A stretch of DNA of 64,000 nt from Lama guanicoe. Its lineage: Eukaryota. Location of the stretch: assembly GCA_013239625.1 (NCBI GenBank), contig MU056925.1, forward strand, positions 2,612,804-2,676,803, written 5' to 3'. The position numbers and the translations under genes were made by a program. The notes under the pieces were generated by a model that did not search any database, was not told where the DNA came from, and saw only the letters and a list, made by a program, of their open reading frames with translations. Below, one piece after another: positions 3,134-58,863 of this stretch (positions are counted from its first letter, which is position 1; the number at the start of each line of letters is the position of its first letter).

Positions 3134-5209
3134 GTGAGGCAGTGGGACGTGACGTTCTGTGAGTGGTTGCTCCATCCTTTGGGAGTGACCTCAGATGCCC
3201 CAGATCGCACTCCCAGGGCCCAGGTAGCGCTCCCCCTCCAGCACACAATTGCACGCTCCCTTTCTGGCCTTACACTGGCTTACATTTTAAGGGATTCTCC
3301 ATGGTTACCAGGACTAAAGATGCCTTCCCTTTGTCTCATGCTGTCCCTAACTTACCTTCTGCCTCATCGCAAGATTCCTTTGTTTTCAGAAAGTCAAAAA
3401 TCTGACAGAAAAGTTAACTGGAGACTTTCCTGGTCATTCTTTCTGTCTTCCATCCTCTTTCCTTCCCTGCCGTGGGATGCCTCTGGCTTGTGTTCTGCCC
3501 CGGGTTCACTCCCACCTCTAGGCCCTCAGATCCCAGCCTGGCTCTCTCCCTAAGCTTATTCGTATTCAGATACATGTTATATAACTTTGTGTTAAAGGTA
3601 TTTTAAAATTTAGGGAAAGGAGGCCTTCAGAAAGCTGGGAAGAGGTTTGATAAATATTTGAAGGCTTCCCCTGAAACATAGGTAGGTTTTGAGCACAGCC
3701 AGCATGGGAAGTCAGACTGAGTGAACAGAAGTGTGTGCAGACTTAGGGTTGGGAATGAGCAGGGCAGAGCCTAGGCTTCCTGGAGCAGAAGGTGTGCTTG
3801 GAACAGGAGTGCAATGGTAGTTTGAATATATATTGTGAATCTAGGTAATGAAAAACCTTACTGGTAAATGATAACTTTTCTGTTTTTTTCCCTATTGTCA
3901 TTTGGGGGTTTTGGTTCAGGGATGTTGTAGATTTCTGAGCACAGAGCTGTCAGTGTTGCGCTGAACGTGGATGAGAGTAACTATAAATAGTGCAGAGGAT
4001 CCCCAAGTTTGTAAGATACATAGAAATAGAAGTTAACATCATAGGAGCTACTGTAGGAATCTGATATTGAAGGTTTTACACCAAATGAAACCTGGGATTA
4101 TGGGAACTCTTATTTGTATTCAGAATTAGGTTGCAGTGTCATACCAGGAACGTGGCTGGTTTTGGTAAATTTAAGTCAGTAAATTGAGAGAAAATTCATG
4201 GCAAAACTTCACAAGTATTTGTATTTGTTTCGTGTCGCTGTTCTAAGTGGTTAGCATATACTAATGAATGCAGCGTTCTCCCAGCCCTCTGGCTTAGGAA
4301 CTGTTGTCTGCATTTCAGGTACATGAAACTGTGTCATAGTTAAGTAACTTGTCAAGGTCCACCAGCCTGTGACGCGTTGGAGTTGGGGTTCTAGTGCTCA
4401 TTAGCGCTGTTCTCTGTTGTGAAGGGAAGTTAGTTGGTGCTAAGACCACAGACCCCTTCAGGGAGCTGATCTTACTGGAGACATTGGTCTACCTTACATT
4501 TCTTTCAGATGTGTGCCTGGGTCTCTCCTTCCAGGTCCCTGTGATTCAGGGCCGGGGAGTTGGAGCCCTGGTTGTGGAACTGTCTCTAAACATGAAGAAG
4601 CTGGAGTGTTTAGAATGGTTCTTTGGATTTATGTGCAGAATAGGAAGGCAGAGATTTTGGAAAGGTCTGGGTTAGAATGTTACCGTGCTAATCTTCGTAT
4701 GGAGTGATACCTGATGGTTTAATGTCAGTTGTGATCTTTTTCTCCCAAACATCATCCATACTTGAATATTTCCTTTGAATGTACGTCCAGTGGTGGTGCT
4801 CATCCTCCCACCAGCCCTGCTGGCTCTGGGTCCTCCTGTTTCTGCCTGGATCTAGCACTCGTTGGAGACTTTGTCCTCTGCTCATGATTTCTTCAGTTTA
4901 TTTCACCTTTTCTACCAAAGTTTTGAACATATTTGTAAAGTAACAAAGCTACTTGTGTTCAGTGTGAGCTTACTCTCCCTTCTTCTTCTACTGCTAAGTC
5001 CGCATTCATCCCTTCCACATTCCTCCTCCACCCCCAGGTGTCTGTCTGCCTCGTATGACAAATCAAGGAGAGAGGACTATATGCTCATGATTACAAATAT
5101 TTGTGGAGATTAGCCCTGAAGCCAGAGTCAAGCCCACGCTGGGCCCACTCCTGTTCTGTAACTGGTGTGCTCAGATTCACAAGGCTTGTTTCATTTTACT
5201 CTTTTTCAG

Positions 5210-7119
<1,910 letters not shown>

Positions 7120-12859: not shown

Positions 12860-13240
12860 TTCATTTTTAGCCAGGATGAAGTAACAGGAAACCGATTTAC
12901 TCTCCTGACTAAACAACTGAAAAACTGGGCGAAACAGGTGAAACTATGGCTTTCGGGCATGGGACATCAGGCAGGACAGGCATCCCCGAGAGAAGAGAAA
13001 GTGACCCCAGCATATCGCCGGGGGAGACTCTCTGGGCCACCGTGCAGGGAAAGGTAGTCGCCCCGAGTGGAAGAGACAGGGGAGGATTCAGGAAGGAGAG
13101 AATTCAGGGAGGCCAAGGAGCTAGAAATCACAGGACGGGGTGAACAGGAGAGACTGCGCAGGGCTCTGAGGCCCTCACACGCGAGAACCCCAAACGCAGG
13201 GGTGCTGGGGGCTCAATTCGGGGGCAGGACTCTCGCGGCT
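12860..13240 (+). mobile_element. Old L1M 5'-end fragment abutting the RBAKDN-like promoter
   Basis: Resembles an ancestral L1 5' UTR (caggatgaagtaacaggaaaccgatttactctcctg...gaattcagggaggccaagg); recalled consensus only. Confidence 0.5.
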
Positions 13241-13575
13241 CAGCAAACGGAGGCCTGACCGTGACTAGGGGGGGATGGCCTGTTGTAACGGGGCGTGGCC
13301 GTGGCTGGAGACTCGCCTCGCCCCAGGGTGTGGCTAAAGAATTCGGGCGGGGCCTGCCCTGGGGGCGTGGCCTCTGGCGTGCTGGGGTGGGCGTAACAAG
13401 GGGCGGGGCGGAGCTCGGGCCAGGGGCGTGGTCAGCAGTGGAGCTCGGCCTGGTCTCCACGAGGCGTCGAAAGCTGCAGCGGACGCTCCTCAGACGAAAA
13501 CTGTTTGGATCGCAGTCTTCGGGGTCCAGAGGCCAGAGACCGGGCTGCGGGCAGACGCGGCAGGGCTGCGGGCAG
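13180..13575 (+). promoter_or_regulatory. CpG-island / GC-box promoter and candidate non-coding first exon of the RBAKDN-like gene
   Basis: Dense CpG; about 7 GGGCGGGG/GGGCGTGG Sp/KLF-type boxes at 13290-13432; candidate donor cag|GTGAAG at 13575/13576. Confidence 0.7.
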
Positions 13576-13714
13576 GTGAAGAGTGACAGGCAGACTGGCG
13601 TGAGGCGCCGGGCACATGGAACGGGGAGGGGACTGGAGAGTGGGTGGGGGACAAAGGACAGGGCCTCTGACCGCCCACCCCTCGCACCTTCCCAGCCTCC
13701 CTGCCCGCCCGGCC

Positions 13715-13835
13715 ATGTGGCGCCCGCTGGTCCTGCTGCTGCTGCTGCTGCTCCCTGCCGCCTCGGTCCCCACCGCCACTGCCGCGCTCATCCCAGGCAC
13801 CCAAAGCCAGAACGGCCCGCAGAGCCGCCTCCTAG
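13715..13835 (+). CDS. RBAKDN: RBAKDN-like small secreted protein, coding exon 1 (MWRPLVLLLLLLLPAASVPTATAALIPGTQSQNGPQSRLL)
   Basis: Acceptor ccttcccag| at 13695; gccATG Kozak; signal-peptide pattern (basic n-region, poly-Leu h-region, small residues ATA-A). Lies directly downstream of RBAK. The phase-1 donor ag|GTCACC is weak. Confidence 0.68.
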
Positions 13836-14315
13836 GTCACCACAGCCTCTCATTGGAGGGTGGGGAAAGGAGGACGACAGAGAAGAGGGGCGCAGACACG
13901 CAGCGAGAAAGGACGCCAGAGGGACACAGAGGAGGAGAAACAGATATAGGGAGGGGGCCTGAGGGACAGAGACGGGGAGATCCAGCAGGACAGATGAGGG
14001 TCAGGAATAAGGAGATAAAGCGACAGAACAGAGACGGGGCAGAGGGACAGGGACCGTTAAGAACAGGGTGGGGGGTGGACCGGTGAGGCCCCGAGGGTCA
14101 GAGGGTGGAGCGGGAGGGGGTGGGGAGGACATGGGCTCAGACTCCCGCACCACCGCCCCAAGCCCCGGGGGACCTGCTGCGGGACAGGAACAATGTCCTC
14201 TCTGCCCCGTGACTTAAGTGCCTACCCGGGGACCCCCACAGCACCAAGGACCATGCGCTGGCTGGGGAGCCGCCCCCTTCCAGCCAGCACCCGGAGCTGA
14301 CTTTTTCCTCCCCAG

Positions 14316-14395
14316 GTACCAGAGCTGGAGGAAACGGGGGGCTACAGGCTGCTGAAAAGCAGGCCCCTCACTTTGGCTGCCCTCCTGCAGTATGA
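14316..14395 (+). CDS. RBAKDN: RBAKDN-like small secreted protein, coding exon 2 ((G)TRAGGNGGLQAAEKQAPHFGCPPAV*); 66-aa spliced product
   Basis: Strong acceptor: branch point ctgac, then tttttcctccccag| at 14315. Phase compatible with the upstream exon; TGA at 14393-14395. Confidence 0.55.
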
Positions 14396-14666
14396 GGTGG
14401 CTGCCTTGGTGGTGCCGCCCCGAAGCCTGGGAGGCTGGCCTGCGGCTCCATGACAAGCGTCCAGGGCTACAGGCCACCTGTGACAGGCTCCCACAGGGGG
14501 CCTCCAGGCAGGGGCCCTGGGGCCTCCCTAACCCCAAACAACACACCCCAAGACCCACTTCTTGGCCCTTCCCAGGCTGGGCAGCAGGGGCTGGGGGTGG
14601 GCATCAGAGCCCTGGCAGGGGACAGACATGTACCCTCACCAGCGCCCACACCCATCTCCATTTAGA

Positions 14667-14672
14667 AATAAA
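14667..14672 (+). terminator. Polyadenylation signal of the RBAKDN-like gene
   Basis: AATAAA at the end of the GC-rich last exon. Confidence 0.6.
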
Positions 14673-15084
14673 TTTCTTTCTGACGGCCAGCTGTGGAGTA
14701 TCCTTTCGGGCCCGTCCCCCACGTGTGGCTGACAAAAACAGTTTCTTCCCTTTTATCTAATCCCTTTGTACAAGCTCCTCAGTCAGGAACTGGGCTGTGT
14801 TGCATGATGCCCACCAGACAGAGGGGCTCACGTTTAATACTTAAGTCCGTTTTGTTTTCAAGAGTGAAGGCATACAGAGTTGTATCCACTGTGTGCTGTT
14901 CAGAGGGACGCTCTCCCAGATGCTCCCGCCCCAACTTGAAAATTGCCTAAAATGATGATCACATGGGATTGGTTAAAAATGCTAGCATCCCGTAGTCCTG
15001 GTGCTAAAAATTGAAGAAAACACACGAAGATGGCTACTGGACAGCACAGATATTGAGTGATGTCCTCTGGAGTGAGAAGAAACT

Positions 15085-15500
15085 TTAAGACGGACAATGA
15101 AGCCGGCCACCCCAGAAAGTGCCATTACGAAGTTATTGTAACTTACAGGCAGGACCAAGCGGACACCAACCAGAGGCCTTTGCAGTGGAACTCCATGCAG
15201 CTGAAAGGTGTCCAGGGGATAAAAAGGGGCCAAAGCTAAAAGCAGAATCTGACTACCAAGGGAGAAGCCTGTCCGCACTGACAGGAACCGGGGTTTTTCC
15301 TCCCCCTGGGGTCTAATGACCATTACCCGTGTGTGTCAGCCAAAGCCGTTCTTTTAGTTTTCATATAAGATGAAGGGTCAGCATGGACAGGGTGTGGTGC
15401 GTTCCTTGTGAGTAGGCTCAGTCATGCAGAAATGGGAGGGGTTCAGCCTGCAGGCCTAAGACAGAGCTGACAAAATGGAGTCAGTGTGGTTCAGCCCCAC
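15085..15500 (-). mobile_element. Probable ERV LTR remnant
   Basis: Ends in caaaatggagtca (tgactccattttg on minus), typical near the 5' end of ERV1 LTRs; boundaries uncertain. Confidence 0.35.
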
Positions 15501-15992
15501 CCTGGGTCATTCACAAAGGAGGACGCTTGCCTTTGGACTTTGTTAAAATGACGTTTTGAGGTTGAAGTGGTGGCATATTCCTCATGGGCTCTGTTCTGTG
15601 TTCTGGGGTCCAGAGTTGGGCCCAGGCCATGGAGTTGTCTGGCAACCAGGCAGCCCAGCTTTTCTTCAGCCTCTGACGGTCACAGCCATTGTCCGGATAG
15701 TGCCTTGCTCCATCCAAGCTGGAGGCACTGACCCACAGTGATCCCTGCTTTCAGATGGTGGAGCAGGGTAGATGCATGACATCCAGAAGAGGGCAGGGGC
15801 TGAGCTGGAGGCCAGAGGGGGCAGGATGTGCAGACAGAGTGGAGCTGGCATGAGGAGGCATGATGGGTGGGTGAGACAGATGATTATAAACTGGCTCAGG
15901 CCAGGGTAGGGGTGCAGCTGGTGAGGATGCGCAGGGGCCTGGAGTGAGTTTGCGCAGTGGAAATATCAGGCAGCAAGAAATGTCCTTTCCAG

Positions 15993-16090
15993 GAGGGAAG
16001 GGAAATAGCTCAGTGGTAGAGCACATGCTTAGCATGCACGAGGTCCTGGGTTCAATCCCCAGTACCTCCATTAAAAAAGAAAAAAAGAAA
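15993..16090 (+). mobile_element. tRNA-derived SINE (camelid vic-1 type)
   Basis: A box tagctcagtgg, B box ggttcaatcc, body agcacatgcttagcatgcacgaggtcctg, poly-A tail. Confidence 0.88.
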
Positions 16091-26742: not shown

Positions 26743-26829
26743 GTGATGATGATGGTGGTGGTGACTGTGGTGGTGGTGGTGGTGGTGGTGACTGTGGTGG
26801 TGGTGGTGGTGGTGGTGGTGATGAGGATG
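26743..26829 (+). repeat. Interrupted (GTG)n/(GAT)n trinucleotide microsatellite
   Basis: gatgatgat, then gtg runs interrupted twice by act. Confidence 0.95.
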
Positions 26830-30930: not shown

Positions 30931-31908
30931 ATGAGCCACTGGCCTGCGTTGAACTGGACCACCCCCCAGCAGTTCGTAATCCTGGGTTTCTCCGGGTGGC
31001 CCCAGGGGCTACGGGTGCTGCTCTTTGCCCTCCTCCTGCCGCTCTATCTGGCCACGCTGGCAGGAAACCTGCTCATCCTGGGCCTGGCCGTCCTGGATGA
31101 CGCCCTGCACACTCCGATGTACTTCTTTCTGGGGGCTCTGTCTGCCGTGGAGGTGGCCTACACACTGGTGCTGACTCCGCGCATGCTGTCTGGCTTCCTC
31201 CTGCCTCCCGGGGGCCAGGCGGTGGTCCCTTCCACCTGTGCGGCCCAGATGGGTCTCTTTGTGGCCCTGGGAGGCTCAGAGTGCCTGCTCCTGGCCGCCA
31301 TGGCCCTGGACCGCTACTGGGCCATCTGCCGCCCCCTCTACTACCCTCAGCTCATGACCTCGGGGCTCTGCTGGGGCCTTCTGGCCTCCTGCTGTGGAGG
31401 GGGCTCTCTCCTGGCCCTCGGCCTCACCGCAGCCGTATTCCAGCTGCCCTTCTGCCACGGGGGCTTGGTCAACCACGTCTTCTGTGACCTCCCGGCCGTG
31501 TTGGTGCTGGCCTGTGGGAACCGGGACCTGCAGGAGCGGGTACTGCTGGCAGCCTGCCTGCTGCTGCTGGTGCTGCCCCTGGCCCTGATCCTGCTGTCCT
31601 ACACCCGGGTGCTGGTGGTCATCCTCGGGGTTGGGGGTGCTGCCGGCCGCCGCAAGGCCTTCAACACTGTGGCGTCGCACCTCACCGTGGCTGTGCTCCA
31701 CTATGGCTGCGCCACGGCCATGTACGCCAGGCCCCTGAGCAGCCGCTCCCTGGAGGAGGACAAGCTGGTCTCGCTCGTCTACATCAGCCTCACGCCCCTG
31801 CTCTACCCGGCCATCTACACGCTGCGGAACCGGGACGTGCAGGGCGCGCTGCAGCGGGTGGTCAGCCCCCGGACGCCGGGCACTGTCCGCCAGGCTGATG
31901 GCACCTAA
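30931..31908 (+). CDS. OR10AH1: Olfactory receptor, class II, family 10-like (325 aa, intact, single coding exon); probable OR10AH1 orthologue
   Basis: OR motifs: N-terminal NWT sequon, GNLLI, LHTPMYFFL, MALDRYWAICRPLYY, HVFCD, KAFNTVASHL, PLLYPAIYTLRN; 7 hydrophobic segments. The OR call is very secure; the symbol is inferred from synteny with RBAK only. Confidence 0.9.
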   Translation: MSHWPALNWTTPQQFVILGFSGWPQGLRVLLFALLLPLYLATLAGNLLILGLAVLDDALHTPMYFFLGALSAVEVAYTLVLTPRMLSGFLLPPGGQAVVPSTCAAQMGLFVALGGSECLLLAAMALDRYWAICRPLYYPQLMTSGLCWGLLASCCGGGSLLALGLTAAVFQLPFCHGGLVNHVFCDLPAVLVLACGNRDLQERVLLAACLLLLVLPLALILLSYTRVLVVILGVGGAAGRRKAFNTVASHLTVAVLHYGCATAMYARPLSSRSLEEDKLVSLVYISLTPLLYPAIYTLRNRDVQGALQRVVSPRTPGTVRQADGT

Positions 31909-42699: not shown

Positions 42700-45685
42700 A
42701 TATAATGTTAGTGTGTAAATCATTTTAAACACTGGTTTAGAAGTTAAAAGGCAAAAGTTTAAGAATAATTGTAATCACAGATGTGTTCATGGGAACAATA
42801 TAAAAGGAAGTAAAATCTGTCATAAATAACAAAGTGGGCGGGAGTAAACTGTGGAGTTTCTGTATGTGATTGAAGTTGTTATCAAGTTAAAAATAGACTC
42901 TTATACCTATTAAATATTCAACGCAAGCCTCATAGTAACTACAAAAATCTGTAATAGATACACAAAAATAAAGAGAAAAGAATCGAAGTATATCACTACC
43001 AAAAAAATCCTCAAACCACAACAAAGGCAACAAGAGAGGAAGAGATGAACAAGAGAACGATAAAACAGGAAGCAATTAACAAAATGGCAATACTAAGTCC
43101 TTACCTATCAATAATTGCTTTAAATATAAATTAACTAAACTCCCCAAATTAAAACACATACTATAGCCAAATGGAGTTAAAAAAAAAAAGGACTCACCTA
43201 TTTGCTGTCCACAGGAGACTCACTTTAGATTTAAGAACACACATTGGGTGAAAGTGAAGGGATGGAGAAAGATAGTCCATGCAAAGGGTAATCAAAAGAG
43301 AACTGGTCTGGCTCTACTTATTTCAGACAAAATAGACTAAGTAAAAACTGTCACAAGAGATCAAGAAAGTCATTACATAATTCCAAAAGGGTCCATTCAA
43401 CAGGAAGATATAACAATTATATATGCACCCACCATTCAAAGCACCTAAATATATAAAGCAAACATTGACAAATCAGAATAGTGAAGTAGACAGCAATACA
43501 ATAATAATAGCAGACGTAAATACTCCATTCTCAATAATGGATAGCTCATCCACACAGAAAACCAATAAGGAAAGAGCAAAACTGAACAACACTACAGACC
43601 AAATAGCCCTAAAAGATATATACAGAACATTCCACCTAACAGCAACATAATACTGATTCTTCTCAAGAGCACACAGAACATTCTCCAGGATGGATCACGT
43701 GTTAGGTCACAAAAATCTTAACAAATTTAAGAAGACTGGAATTATTCACAAAGCTAGAAATCAGTAATAAAAATGGGAAAAAATTTAAATACATAGAAAT
43801 TAAACAACCACACATTTAAATACCACTGTGTCAAAAAAGAAATCAAAAAGCAAATTAGAAAATATCTCAAGACAAATGAAAATGAAAACACACAAACCAA
43901 AACTTACAAGATGCAGCAAAAGTGGTACTAAGAAGCAAGGTTAGGCAGTAAACACCTACATTAAAAAAATAAGATAGTAAATAAACAACCTAAATGTGCA
44001 CCTTTAGAAAAAGAAGAAACTAAGCCTAAATTAGGAAGTTTTTTGGAAAAGATAAAATTGATAAACCCTTAGCTAGACTAAGGGGGGAAAAAGACTGGAA
44101 TATATAAAATCAGAAATGAAAGAGCAGATATTACAACTCATGCCACAGAAATAAAAAGGATCATAAAGACTATTATATACACCAACAAATTGAACAATTT
44201 AGAATAAATGGATACATTTAAAAATACCAACTTACCAGTGTGAATCAAGAAGAAATAGAAAGCCTTAACAGATCAGTAACAAATAAAGAGAATGAAGAAG
44301 TAACCAAAAAACTGTCAACAAAGAAAATGACTGAATTCTCCNNNNNNNNNNNNNNNNNNNNNNNNNNNNNNNNNNNNNNNNNNNNNNNNNNNNNNNNNNN
44401 NNNNNNNNNNNNNNNNNNNNNNNNNNNNNNNNNNNNNNNNNNNNNNNNNNNNNNNNNNNNNNNNNNNNNNNNNNNNNNNNNNNNNNNNNNNNNNNNNNNN
44501 NNNNNNNNNNNNNNNNNNNNNNNNNNNNNNNNNNNNNNNNNNNNNNNNNNNNNNNNNNNNNNNNNNNNNNNNNNNNNNNNNNNNNNNNNNNNNNNNNNNN
44601 NNNNNNNNNNNNNNNNNNNNNNNNNNNNNNNNNNNNNNNNNNNNNNNNNNNNNNNNNNNNNNNNNNNNNNNNNNNNNNNNNNNNNNNNNNNNNNNNNNNN
44701 NNNNNNNNNNNNNNNNNNNNNNNNNNNNNNNNNNNNNNNNNNNNNNNNNNNNNNNNNNNNNNNNNNNNNNNNNNNNNNNNNNNNNNNNNNNNNNNNNNNN
44801 NNNNNNNNNNNNNNNNNNNNNNNNNNNNNNNNNNNNNNNNNNNNNNNNNNNNNCAAGGATGCCCATTCTTGCCTCTCCTATTCAACATAAAGAGTCCAGC
44901 CAGTGCAATTAGGCAAGAAAAAGAAATAAAAGGCATCCACATCAGAAAGGAGGAAATAATGTATCTCTTTTTGCAGATGATATTACTTTATTGAGTGCAG
45001 GATCTCAGAGATATCTNNNNNNNNNNNNNNNNNNNNNNNNNNNNNNNNNNNNNNNNNNNNNNNNNNNNNNNNNNNNNNNNNNNNNNNNNNNNNNNNNNNN
45101 NNNNNNNNNNNNNNNNNNNNNNNNNNNNNNNNNNNNNNNNNNNNNNNNNNNNNNCCCACCATTTGTGACACCATAAATGGACCTGGAGGACATTATGCTA
45201 AATGAAATAAGCCAGAAATAGGATAACTACTGCATGGCCTCACTTTTATGAGGAATCTAAAACAGTCAAATTCATAGAACGAAAGAGTAGCATGGTGGTC
45301 ACCAGGGGCTGGGAGGGGGAGGAAATGAGGAGGTATTGGCCCAAGGATTGAAAGTTTCTTATGGAAGATGAATAAATCCTGGAGATCTGCGCAGCACAAT
45401 GCATTGTACTTAAAACTGCACAGATAGTCCTAGCTTTATTAAGTACAGACACTCCCATCAAAACTTGCAGAGAATACAGATCTTGTGTTAAACGCTCCTA
45501 CCACAAAAGAAAAATGTTGTAATTTCTGTTAATTTTTGGAGGCAATGGATACATTTATGGCCTTGACTGTGGCGATGGTTTCACGTGTGTACACTTATCT
45601 GTGTTGTGTATATTATACTCAAGTTGTGTATATTAAATATGTAGATTTGTATGTCAGTCGCACCTCAGAGTGGTTTAAAAAATAA
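42700..45685 (+). mobile_element. Fragmented L1 (ORF2 endonuclease/RT remnants and 3' UTR) with two assembly gaps (44342-44853, 45017-45154)
   Basis: Peptides APKYIKQ, DIYRTFH and NQEEIESLNR; L1MA/MB-type 3' UTR. Confidence 0.88.
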
Positions 45686-58672: not shown

Positions 58673-58863
58673 GTAAAATGTTTTTCATATGCTTGTATCA
58701 TTTATACTGCTAAAGTTATTAAAGCTTAAAACTTTAGGATATCCTATATTACATAATGGTGTTAATAAATTTGACTAATATTGTTGCCGGTTTTGTGTGT
58801 ACTGTTTAAACAACCAAATATGACATTGATCTAAAATAGATATTCTTTGTGGCATGTATCCTC

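Follow-up and report, generated by a model that had tools for sequence, protein, structure and literature searches.

The long intergenic non-coding RNA (lincRNA) RBAKDN, or Rbakdn in mouse, is restricted to the testis, and its position is preserved across mouse and human (PMC6999611). For the mouse RNA the CPC score is -0.896 and the cytoplasmic share about 60%, and in spermatocytes the transcript reportedly binds Ptbp2 and makes it more stable (PMC8542969). In the guanaco DNA analysed here, a stretch of 64 kb that we call the window, the first-pass annotation had placed a complete gene for a conserved secreted microprotein at the equivalent position. The question is whether this locus encodes such a peptide or whether it belongs with the known RNA. 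We consider it probable, at roughly 0.65, that the locus is the camelid counterpart of the RBAKDN lncRNA, in which the small open reading frame (sORF) behind the first AUG drifts neutrally and its peptide is not a conserved secreted factor.

The identity of the locus was assessed from its neighbour. The zinc-finger exon at 5101-7119 shares 80% identity with an "RB-associated KRAB zinc finger protein-like" sequence, while the other zinc-finger matches listed for it reach at most 58%. A masked run of N lies within this exon at 6795-6963. The start codon of the putative peptide is located 6.6 kb 3' of the zinc-finger exon, and the two lie on the + strand, so that the locus is directly downstream of an RBAK-like gene in the same orientation. 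A compact transcription unit, running from promoter to poly(A) signal, is thus supported in the RBAK-downstream position, and position is the basis on which we take the locus to be orthologous to human and mouse RBAKDN. The features of the locus are collected in Table 1.

Table 1. Features of the RBAK-downstream locus and of its upstream neighbour, in window coordinates
Feature	Position	Strand	Remarks
Last (zinc-finger) exon, RBAK-like KRAB-ZNF gene	5101-7119	+	ORF and protein matches
CpG-island-type promoter, TATA-less	13180-13700	+	GC 0.69, CpG obs/exp 0.71, 42 CpG
GC/GT boxes of promoter	13291, 13345, 13363, 13400-13406, 13424	+
Candidate exon 1	13440-13575	+	Donor CAG/GTGAAG; 5' end provisional
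Candidate exon 2	13696-13835	+	Good acceptor; 3' end uncertain
Start codon ATG	13715-13717	+	First AUG of exon 1 + exon 2 RNA; dromedary XP_031289176.1 uses the equivalent Met
Perfect (CTG)6.7 microsatellite	13733-13752	+	Encodes poly-Leu core of the "signal peptide"
Proposed exon-2 donor ag/GTCACC	13836-13841	+	Weak
Purine-rich block inside proposed intron	13838-14026	+	No visible dromedary difference; best-conserved piece of locus
Stop of unspliced 123-aa ORF	14084-14086	+	Dromedary model continues here in other frame
Exon-3 branch motif CTGAC (14296-14300), pyrimidine tract, AG acceptor	14296-14315	+
Candidate last exon	14316-14690	+	TGA 14393-14395; AATAAA 14667-14672

All of the gene signals proposed in the first-pass annotation were recovered at their stated coordinates, namely the GC-box CpG promoter, the donor of exon 1, exon 2 with its gccATG, the acceptor of exon 3 with branch point and pyrimidine tract, and the AATAAA. 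No TATA box was found in the region 13180-13700. The exon-1 donor after 13575 has a PWM score of 3.6 bits, which places it at the 97.5th percentile among all GT sites in the window, and is spanned by a 12-nt tandem repeat (13542-13576). The acceptor of exon 2 (tcccag/C at 13696) is preceded by 80% pyrimidine and by a CTGAC branch motif 24-28 nt upstream, and that of exon 3 by the tract tttttcctcccc, followed by ag/G at 14316. The AATAAA at 14667, which is the sole poly(A) signal in 13400-16000, has a GT-rich stretch on its 3' side. The donor of exon 2 had already been called weak, and rightly so: TAG/GTCACC, at -2.6 bits, ranks at the 69th percentile of all GT sites and does not rise above background. 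Alternative donors are present after 13859 (2.3 bits), which leaves the phase unchanged and would give a product of 74 amino acids (aa), and after 14082 (5.2 bits), in a different phase. Taken together, promoter, both acceptors and poly(A) signal form a coherent small gene, of which the exon structure is putative.

RNA-seq runs from five studies, two of them labelled "reproductive system", contain part of the stretch. The best of the RNA runs hold 0.30-0.31 of the sampled words, as compared with 0.86 for DNA runs. After scaling, the expected share is 0.31 for a short exon plus exon 3 and 0.65 for the unspliced form, so that the observed share fits a spliced rather than an unspliced RNA; it is compatible with splicing and does not place the junction. 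The runs from the two "reproductive system" studies hold 0.10-0.31 of the words, with tissue and sex unspecified.

The ATG at 13715 is the first in a transcript composed of 13300-13575, which contains no ATG at all, and exon 2. Its context (ccGgccATGt) is an adequate Kozak sequence with G at -3 and T at +4. The frame crosses into exon 3 in phase 1 and stops at TGA 14393-14395; counted exon by exon, 40 codons, a GGT codon divided by the junction and a further 25 codons reproduce the length of 66 aa that had been claimed for the spliced ORF. The 123-aa ORF predicted for an intron-retaining RNA likewise ends at 14086, as its stop was found at 14084-14086. Since the frame opens with the first AUG, whose context is adequate, and closes in the last exon, its translation is mechanistically likely if exon 2 is included. 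The N-terminus also follows the classical rules for signal peptides, in agreement with the textbook layout described earlier: by a rule-based check, an n-region MWRP and an h-region LVLLLLLLL are followed by PAASVPTATA/A, with A-x-A at -3/-1.

Neither the ORF nor its "signal peptide" is unusual compared with chance. At the local base composition, taken as frequencies pooled over the three exon stretches, 66 codons without a stop have a probability of 0.23. The hydrophobic core is encoded by the CTG repeat, which in dromedary is shorter by one Leu codon, and a crude n/h/c rule is satisfied at four other loci in the 64-kb window, three of them on simple repeats. Together with the background-level donor, these observations make the ORF and its leader unremarkable.

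Protein searches were performed exon by exon and with the unspliced 123-aa ORF. Among 1.84 billion representative proteins the sole relative was XP_031289176.1 (236 aa), "uncharacterized protein LOC116147235 [Camelus dromedarius]", which the NCBI pipeline calls protein-coding; no relative outside Camelus was found. A word-indexed search of 5.8 billion proteins gave no match for the unspliced 123-aa ORF (lengths 68-215 aa) or for the 40-aa exon-2 part (lengths 22-70 aa), and the exact look-up in a protein collection found none of the 123-aa ORF, a 156-aa ORF and an olfactory-receptor ORF. No host-derived relatives were detected in a metagenome scan, Pfam has no family for the ORF, Rfam returned only sub-threshold miRNA-like matches (E at least 0.35), and no human protein was returned by any of the searches. 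In the literature, no paper was found that connects RBAKDN with a microprotein, A6NC62 or "protein RBAKDN", and RBAKDN is absent from the examined supplements of Sandmann et al. (2023). With up to 3 mismatches allowed, the window contains no match to two 20-nt FISH probes for mouse Rbakdn, a result that is uninformative at such an evolutionary distance.

The dromedary protein allowed a comparison within the camelids. XP_031289176.1 has the same Met and leader (its first 38 aa are 95% identical) and then reads through the proposed intron. Aligned to the window, it occupies three frames; at least two indels shift the frame, and in-frame stops occur at 14084-14086 and 14298-14300. Within the 66-codon frame, exon 2 differs by three non-synonymous changes and the Leu-codon indel, and exon 3 by G>D, G>E and one synonymous change, which amounts to at least five non-synonymous changes and one synonymous change in differences visible at the amino-acid level in a single species pair. 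The resulting dN of at least 0.0355, set against an intron proxy of 0.026-0.044, gives for this one camelid pair and its amino-acid-visible changes an omega of at least about 0.8-1.4. An omega of 0.2 or less is rejected (P = 0.0009-0.009), while an omega of 0.5 is still allowed under the higher neutral proxy. Visible substitutions per site amount to 0.043 in the putative coding sequence and to 0.026 in the intron, the coding sequence being no better kept. None of the 15 visible substitutions falls in the block 13838-14026 (P = 0.0065, post hoc).

On this evidence the 66-codon frame appears to drift at about the neutral rate between the two camelids. With five non-synonymous changes to one synonymous change plus a codon indel, it does not behave as the coding sequence under purifying selection that a secreted microprotein would have; in this one species pair and at the level of amino-acid-visible changes, the locus agrees with the RBAKDN lncRNA in having no ORF under purifying selection. 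The claim of a conserved secreted microprotein is therefore not upheld, given this omega, relatives only in Camelus and a coding sequence no better kept than the intron. Secreted proteins with reproductive roles frequently show an omega near 1, and neutral-looking divergence in one pair is thus compatible with function.

The rival closest to the first-pass annotation is a three-exon mRNA for a 66-aa pre-peptide, cleaved after A21-T22-A23 to release a fast-evolving, Gly/Gln-rich germ-cell peptide that has a single Cys in about 43 aa. Such a peptide would account for the classical layout from MWRP through LVLLLLLLL to the A-x-A at -3/-1, for an ORF that opens at the first AUG and stops in the last exon, and for the Met and leader retained in dromedary; the share of words in RNA runs agrees with short exons and exon 3, and an in-phase donor after 13859 would also preserve the exon-3 frame. 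We nevertheless regard it as unlikely, as the donor at 13835 is at background level, the leader is a microsatellite of variable length, and at least five non-synonymous changes to one synonymous change have accumulated in a coding sequence no better kept than the intron. Moreover, the searches yielded no relative beyond Camelus and assigned the ORF to no known family, neither a processing motif nor a fold is recognisable in the mature part, and mouse Rbakdn scores as non-coding. A wider proposal is that RBAKDN is a bifunctional gene, in which germ cells would translate the first-AUG ORF of the camelid transcript, and possibly those of the transcripts of other mammals, to produce a secreted peptide of about 43-50 aa that evolves rapidly. 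The human RBAKDN locus may have a similar ORF, which we counted against an explanation by lncRNA only. The bifunctional gene strikes us as improbable.

Two further rivals would assign the start codon a different role. Exons 2 and 3 might mainly provide alternative 3' exons for RBAK read-through transcripts, in which the ATG at 13715 would be internal and irrelevant. Several papers regard human RBAK-RBAKDN as a gene, and the same strand as the RBAK-like gene, two strong acceptors and a frame that is also open from the exon-2 acceptor up to the ATG are consistent with read-through; against it, the locus has its own CpG-island promoter and exon-1 donor, and we consider this use of the exons distinctly improbable. 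It would be compatible with the RBAKDN lncRNA explanation and not exclusive of it. Far less credible is a protein-coding gene of the type annotated by NCBI as dromedary LOC116147235, with an unspliced ORF of at least 236 aa running from the same ATG through the "intron" into exon 3. Although XP_031289176.1 starts at the same Met and is 95% identical over 38 aa, its path through the window needs three frames and meets two stops, so that the long ORF is not common even to camelids. The protein is alone in its 90%-identity cluster, it has no Pfam match, the share found in RNA runs is far below that expected of an unspliced RNA, and stop-poor GC-rich sequence gives long ORFs by chance. A continuous ORF from the ATG through 14420 is contradicted in the window.

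Under the preferred reading as the camelid counterpart of RBAKDN, the CpG-island promoter would drive a short polyadenylated transcript in reproductive tissue, which would act, if at all, as an RNA; such an RNA-level function is carried over by analogy from mouse Rbakdn. The first AUG at 13715 would open a small frame with a hydrophobic leader derived from the CTG microsatellite, and ribosomes may well scan into it. As the sequence appears to drift about neutrally, the peptide would most likely be a by-product rather than a conserved secreted factor.

A genuine peptide would mean that a lncRNA with a reported role in controlling the stability of Ptbp2 in meiosis also encodes a factor secreted by germ cells, and the published knock-down phenotypes would need to be re-read. 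Under the preferred reading, a CTG microsatellite behind the first AUG of a GC-rich transcript from testis can take on the look of a textbook signal peptide, and automatic annotation, as in the 236-aa dromedary model, can raise such a frame to a "protein" that fails comparison with a sister genome.

Compared with known systems, the locus shares with XP_031289176.1 the start codon and leader, and the remainder is collinear, whereas the dromedary model has one Leu fewer, reads through the proposed intron and occupies three frames on the window. Like lncRNA-encoded microproteins, the locus has a first-AUG ORF of fewer than 100 codons with a hydrophobic N-terminus in an RNA annotated as non-coding; validated examples are backed by ribosome or peptide evidence and usually by conservation, while in the present case the pairwise divergence looks neutral. 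With regard to RBAKDN/Rbakdn, stabilisation of Ptbp2 is documented in mouse cells only. The likeness lies in the position immediately 3' of, and in the same orientation as, an RBAK-like KRAB-ZNF gene, in the small multi-exon polyadenylated unit, here composed of candidate exons, and in the presence of part of the camelid locus in RNA runs labelled "reproductive system".

The first-pass annotation had placed a three-exon gene at the RBAKDN position, and every feature that it listed (promoter, exon and splice coordinates, ATG, poly(A) signal) was found in 12900-14900. Seven GC/GT-box matches spanning 13291-13431 lie in the promoter stretch (13180-13700), in which no TATA box was found. A GGGGCGTGGCC/GGGGCGTGGTC motif is repeated at 13291, 13363 and 13424 with a spacing of ~61-72 nt, a GGGGCGGGGCGG box lies among these copies at 13400, and the exon-1 donor is overlapped by a 12-nt tandem repeat (GGGCTGCGGGCA x3.2; 13542-13576). 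Since there is no ATG in 13300-13575 or in exon 2 before 13715, the ATG at this position is the first AUG of an RNA joining exons 1 and 2. Translated exon by exon, the frame runs for 40 codons, then crosses a split GGT codon and has 25 more before a TGA at 14393-14395, in agreement with the proposed length of 66 aa; the unspliced frame likewise gives the proposed 123 aa, with its stop at 14084-14086. The stop of the 66-codon frame is overlapped by the ATG of a 122-codon ORF (14392-14760, +). The latter has no stop through the AATAAA, which would make it a non-stop frame once the RNA is polyadenylated, and it is most likely meaningless.

Features of the candidate gene. Donors were scored with a simple position-weight matrix and ranked against all GT sites in the window.
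Feature	Position	Strand	Details
Promoter-type stretch	13180-13700	+	GC 0.69, CpG observed/expected 0.71
Exon-1 donor CAG/GTGAAG	after 13575	+	3.6 bits, 97.5th percentile of the window's GT sites
Exon-2 acceptor	exon opens 13696	+	80% pyrimidine, CTGAC branch motif upstream
Start codon ATG	13715	+	context ccGgccATGt
Exon-3 acceptor	last exon opens 14316	+	CTGAC at 14296, 12-nt pyrimidine tract, AG
Poly(A) signal AATAAA	14667	+	sole poly(A) signal within 13400-16000

The position beside RBAK was borne out by a zinc-finger ORF of 672 codons (5101-7119) on the same strand upstream. A search that scored the 8000 best word-sharing candidates gave 80% identity to an 'RB-associated KRAB zinc finger protein-like' entry and at most 58% to other zinc-finger proteins among the matches listed, which included no camelid RBAK; with an RBAK-like protein as best match, the RBAK-downstream position holds. 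An N run of 169 bases (6795-6963) lies within this zinc-finger exon, and others are found at 44342-44853 and 45017-45154. An intact olfactory-receptor-type ORF of 325 aa (30931-31908, +), whose exact sequence is absent from a collection of 15 billion proteins, lies ~16 kb downstream of the candidate gene.

As the annotation itself had cautioned, the proposed exon-2 donor (TAG/GTCACC) is weak, its -2.6 bits (69th percentile of all GT sites) being at background level. A stronger donor after 13859 (2.3 bits) has the same phase and would give 74 aa with the exon-3 frame unchanged, and another after 14082 (5.2 bits) has the other phase. Part of 13400-14700 is contained in 17 runs, with sampled-word shares of 0.83-0.86 in DNA-type runs and 0.09-0.31 in RNA-seq runs from five studies, two of them labelled 'reproductive system'. 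Scaled by 0.86, the share expected for a single short exon together with exon 3 comes to 0.31, compared with 0.47 for a long exon 2 and 0.65 for unspliced RNA. The best RNA runs (0.30-0.31) equal the first value and lie well below the other two; therefore, most of 13836-14315 is probably removed from the RNA. The word share thus favours a spliced transcript, fitting an exon 1-exon 3 and an exon 2-exon 3 junction alike and leaving the donor unlocated.

A 66-codon ORF is not very unusual here: with a stop probability of 0.022 per codon, derived from the pooled base composition of the three exon stretches, 66 stop-free codons are expected at P = 0.23. What had been called a textbook signal peptide does satisfy a crude rule for n-, h- and c-regions with small residues at -3 and -1 (MWRP, LVLLLLLLL, A-T-A/A), but the poly-Leu stretch of its h-region is encoded by a perfect (CTG)6.7 microsatellite (13733-13752), and the same rule is satisfied at four other loci in the 64-kb window, three of which sit on simple repeats (poly-Val at 26746; CVCV at 58854 and 12408).

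Word-indexed searches of 5.8 billion proteins, run with the unspliced ORF of 123 aa (lengths 68-215) and with the exon-2 part of 40 aa (lengths 22-70), returned no match. When 1.84 billion representatives were searched in full by HMMER with the exon-2 part, a single protein was found at E ≤ 0.001, XP_031289176.1 ('uncharacterized protein LOC116147235 [Camelus dromedarius]'; 236 aa, E = 1.8e-11, 95% identity over residues 1-38), the sole member of its 90%-identity cluster. It starts at the candidate's Met, whereas its reading continues straight across the proposed intron, and the annotated dromedary 'protein' therefore differs from the 66-aa product. Its match to the window is spread over three frames (13715-14026, 14023-14154 and 14157-14420), implying at least two frameshifting indels between the two camelids, and its path meets stops at 14084 and 14298; thus, the long ORF is not common to both species and is probably a species-specific annotation artefact of stop-poor GC-rich sequence. 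No family was found in Pfam or, above threshold, in Rfam, and a metagenome scan yielded no host-derived copies. As to the putative human ORF that the first-pass annotation had matched to both exons, the protein searches matched no human protein, and the literature search found no paper mentioning A6NC62 or an RBAKDN protein. The blank protein and family searches are weak evidence of absence beyond camelids; to pass in a library of 1.84 billion, a 40-aa Leu-rich query must score ~41 bits or more.

Single-nucleotide differences were deduced from the dromedary protein where they alter the residue encoded in its frame ('visible' changes). In exon 2 they fall at 13799 (T/A), 13811 (N/D) and 13833 (L/R), in addition to a difference of one Leu codon in the repeat, and in exon 3, in the 66-codon frame, at 14316 (G>D), 14331 (G>E) and 14353 (synonymous). 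The proposed intron holds nine. Visible change per site is 0.043 in the putative CDS versus 0.026 in the intron. Within the proposed intron, a purine-rich block of 63 codons (13838-14026) shows no such change, all 15 visible substitutions falling outside it (P = 0.0065, post hoc); this block may be an RNA element under constraint or, alternatively, genuinely exonic. With dN of at least 5/141 = 0.0355, omega comes to 1.4 or more if the whole intron serves as neutral proxy and to 0.8 or more with its variable part alone, for one species pair in which synonymous changes of exon 2 escape notice and the mutation rate of CpG islands may be elevated. Values of omega ≤ 0.2 (P = 0.0009-0.009) and ≤ 0.3 (P = 0.005-0.04) are rejected, and 0.5 under the lower neutral proxy only. 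Even so, conservation as strong as an ancient peptide should show is excluded.

A real secreted peptide that evolves fast is unlikely in our judgement, and a rapidly evolving germ-cell peptide hidden at the locus keeps a rather slim residual chance. A role of the exons chiefly in transcripts that read through from RBAK, as at human RBAK-RBAKDN, is quite improbable, although compatible with the reading preferred below, and a long protein of the dromedary type, annotated in that species and interrupted by frameshifts and stops in this one, is highly improbable.

We favour, with a probability of about 0.65, the view that the locus is the RBAKDN orthologue of camelids and a small lncRNA gene of the testis or reproductive tract. 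It would be driven by its own CpG-island promoter, and its first AUG would open a microsatellite-derived ORF that resembles a signal peptide and drifts neutrally. The first-pass interpretation is supported in part: the gene that had been proposed is present, but its reading as a conserved secreted microprotein is not supported. Translation of the 66-codon ORF as such is plausible in view of the first AUG, its adequate context, the last-exon stop and, in mouse, an RNA that is mostly cytoplasmic. RBAKDN/Rbakdn has been described as a testis-restricted lincRNA whose position shows conservation across mouse and human (PMC6999611), and mouse Rbakdn as a meiotic lncRNA (CPC score -0.896, ~60% cytoplasmic) reported to bind and stabilise Ptbp2 (PMC8542969). 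As to its kind, the locus is a known one, the RBAKDN lncRNA, of which the dromedary has an annotated counterpart.
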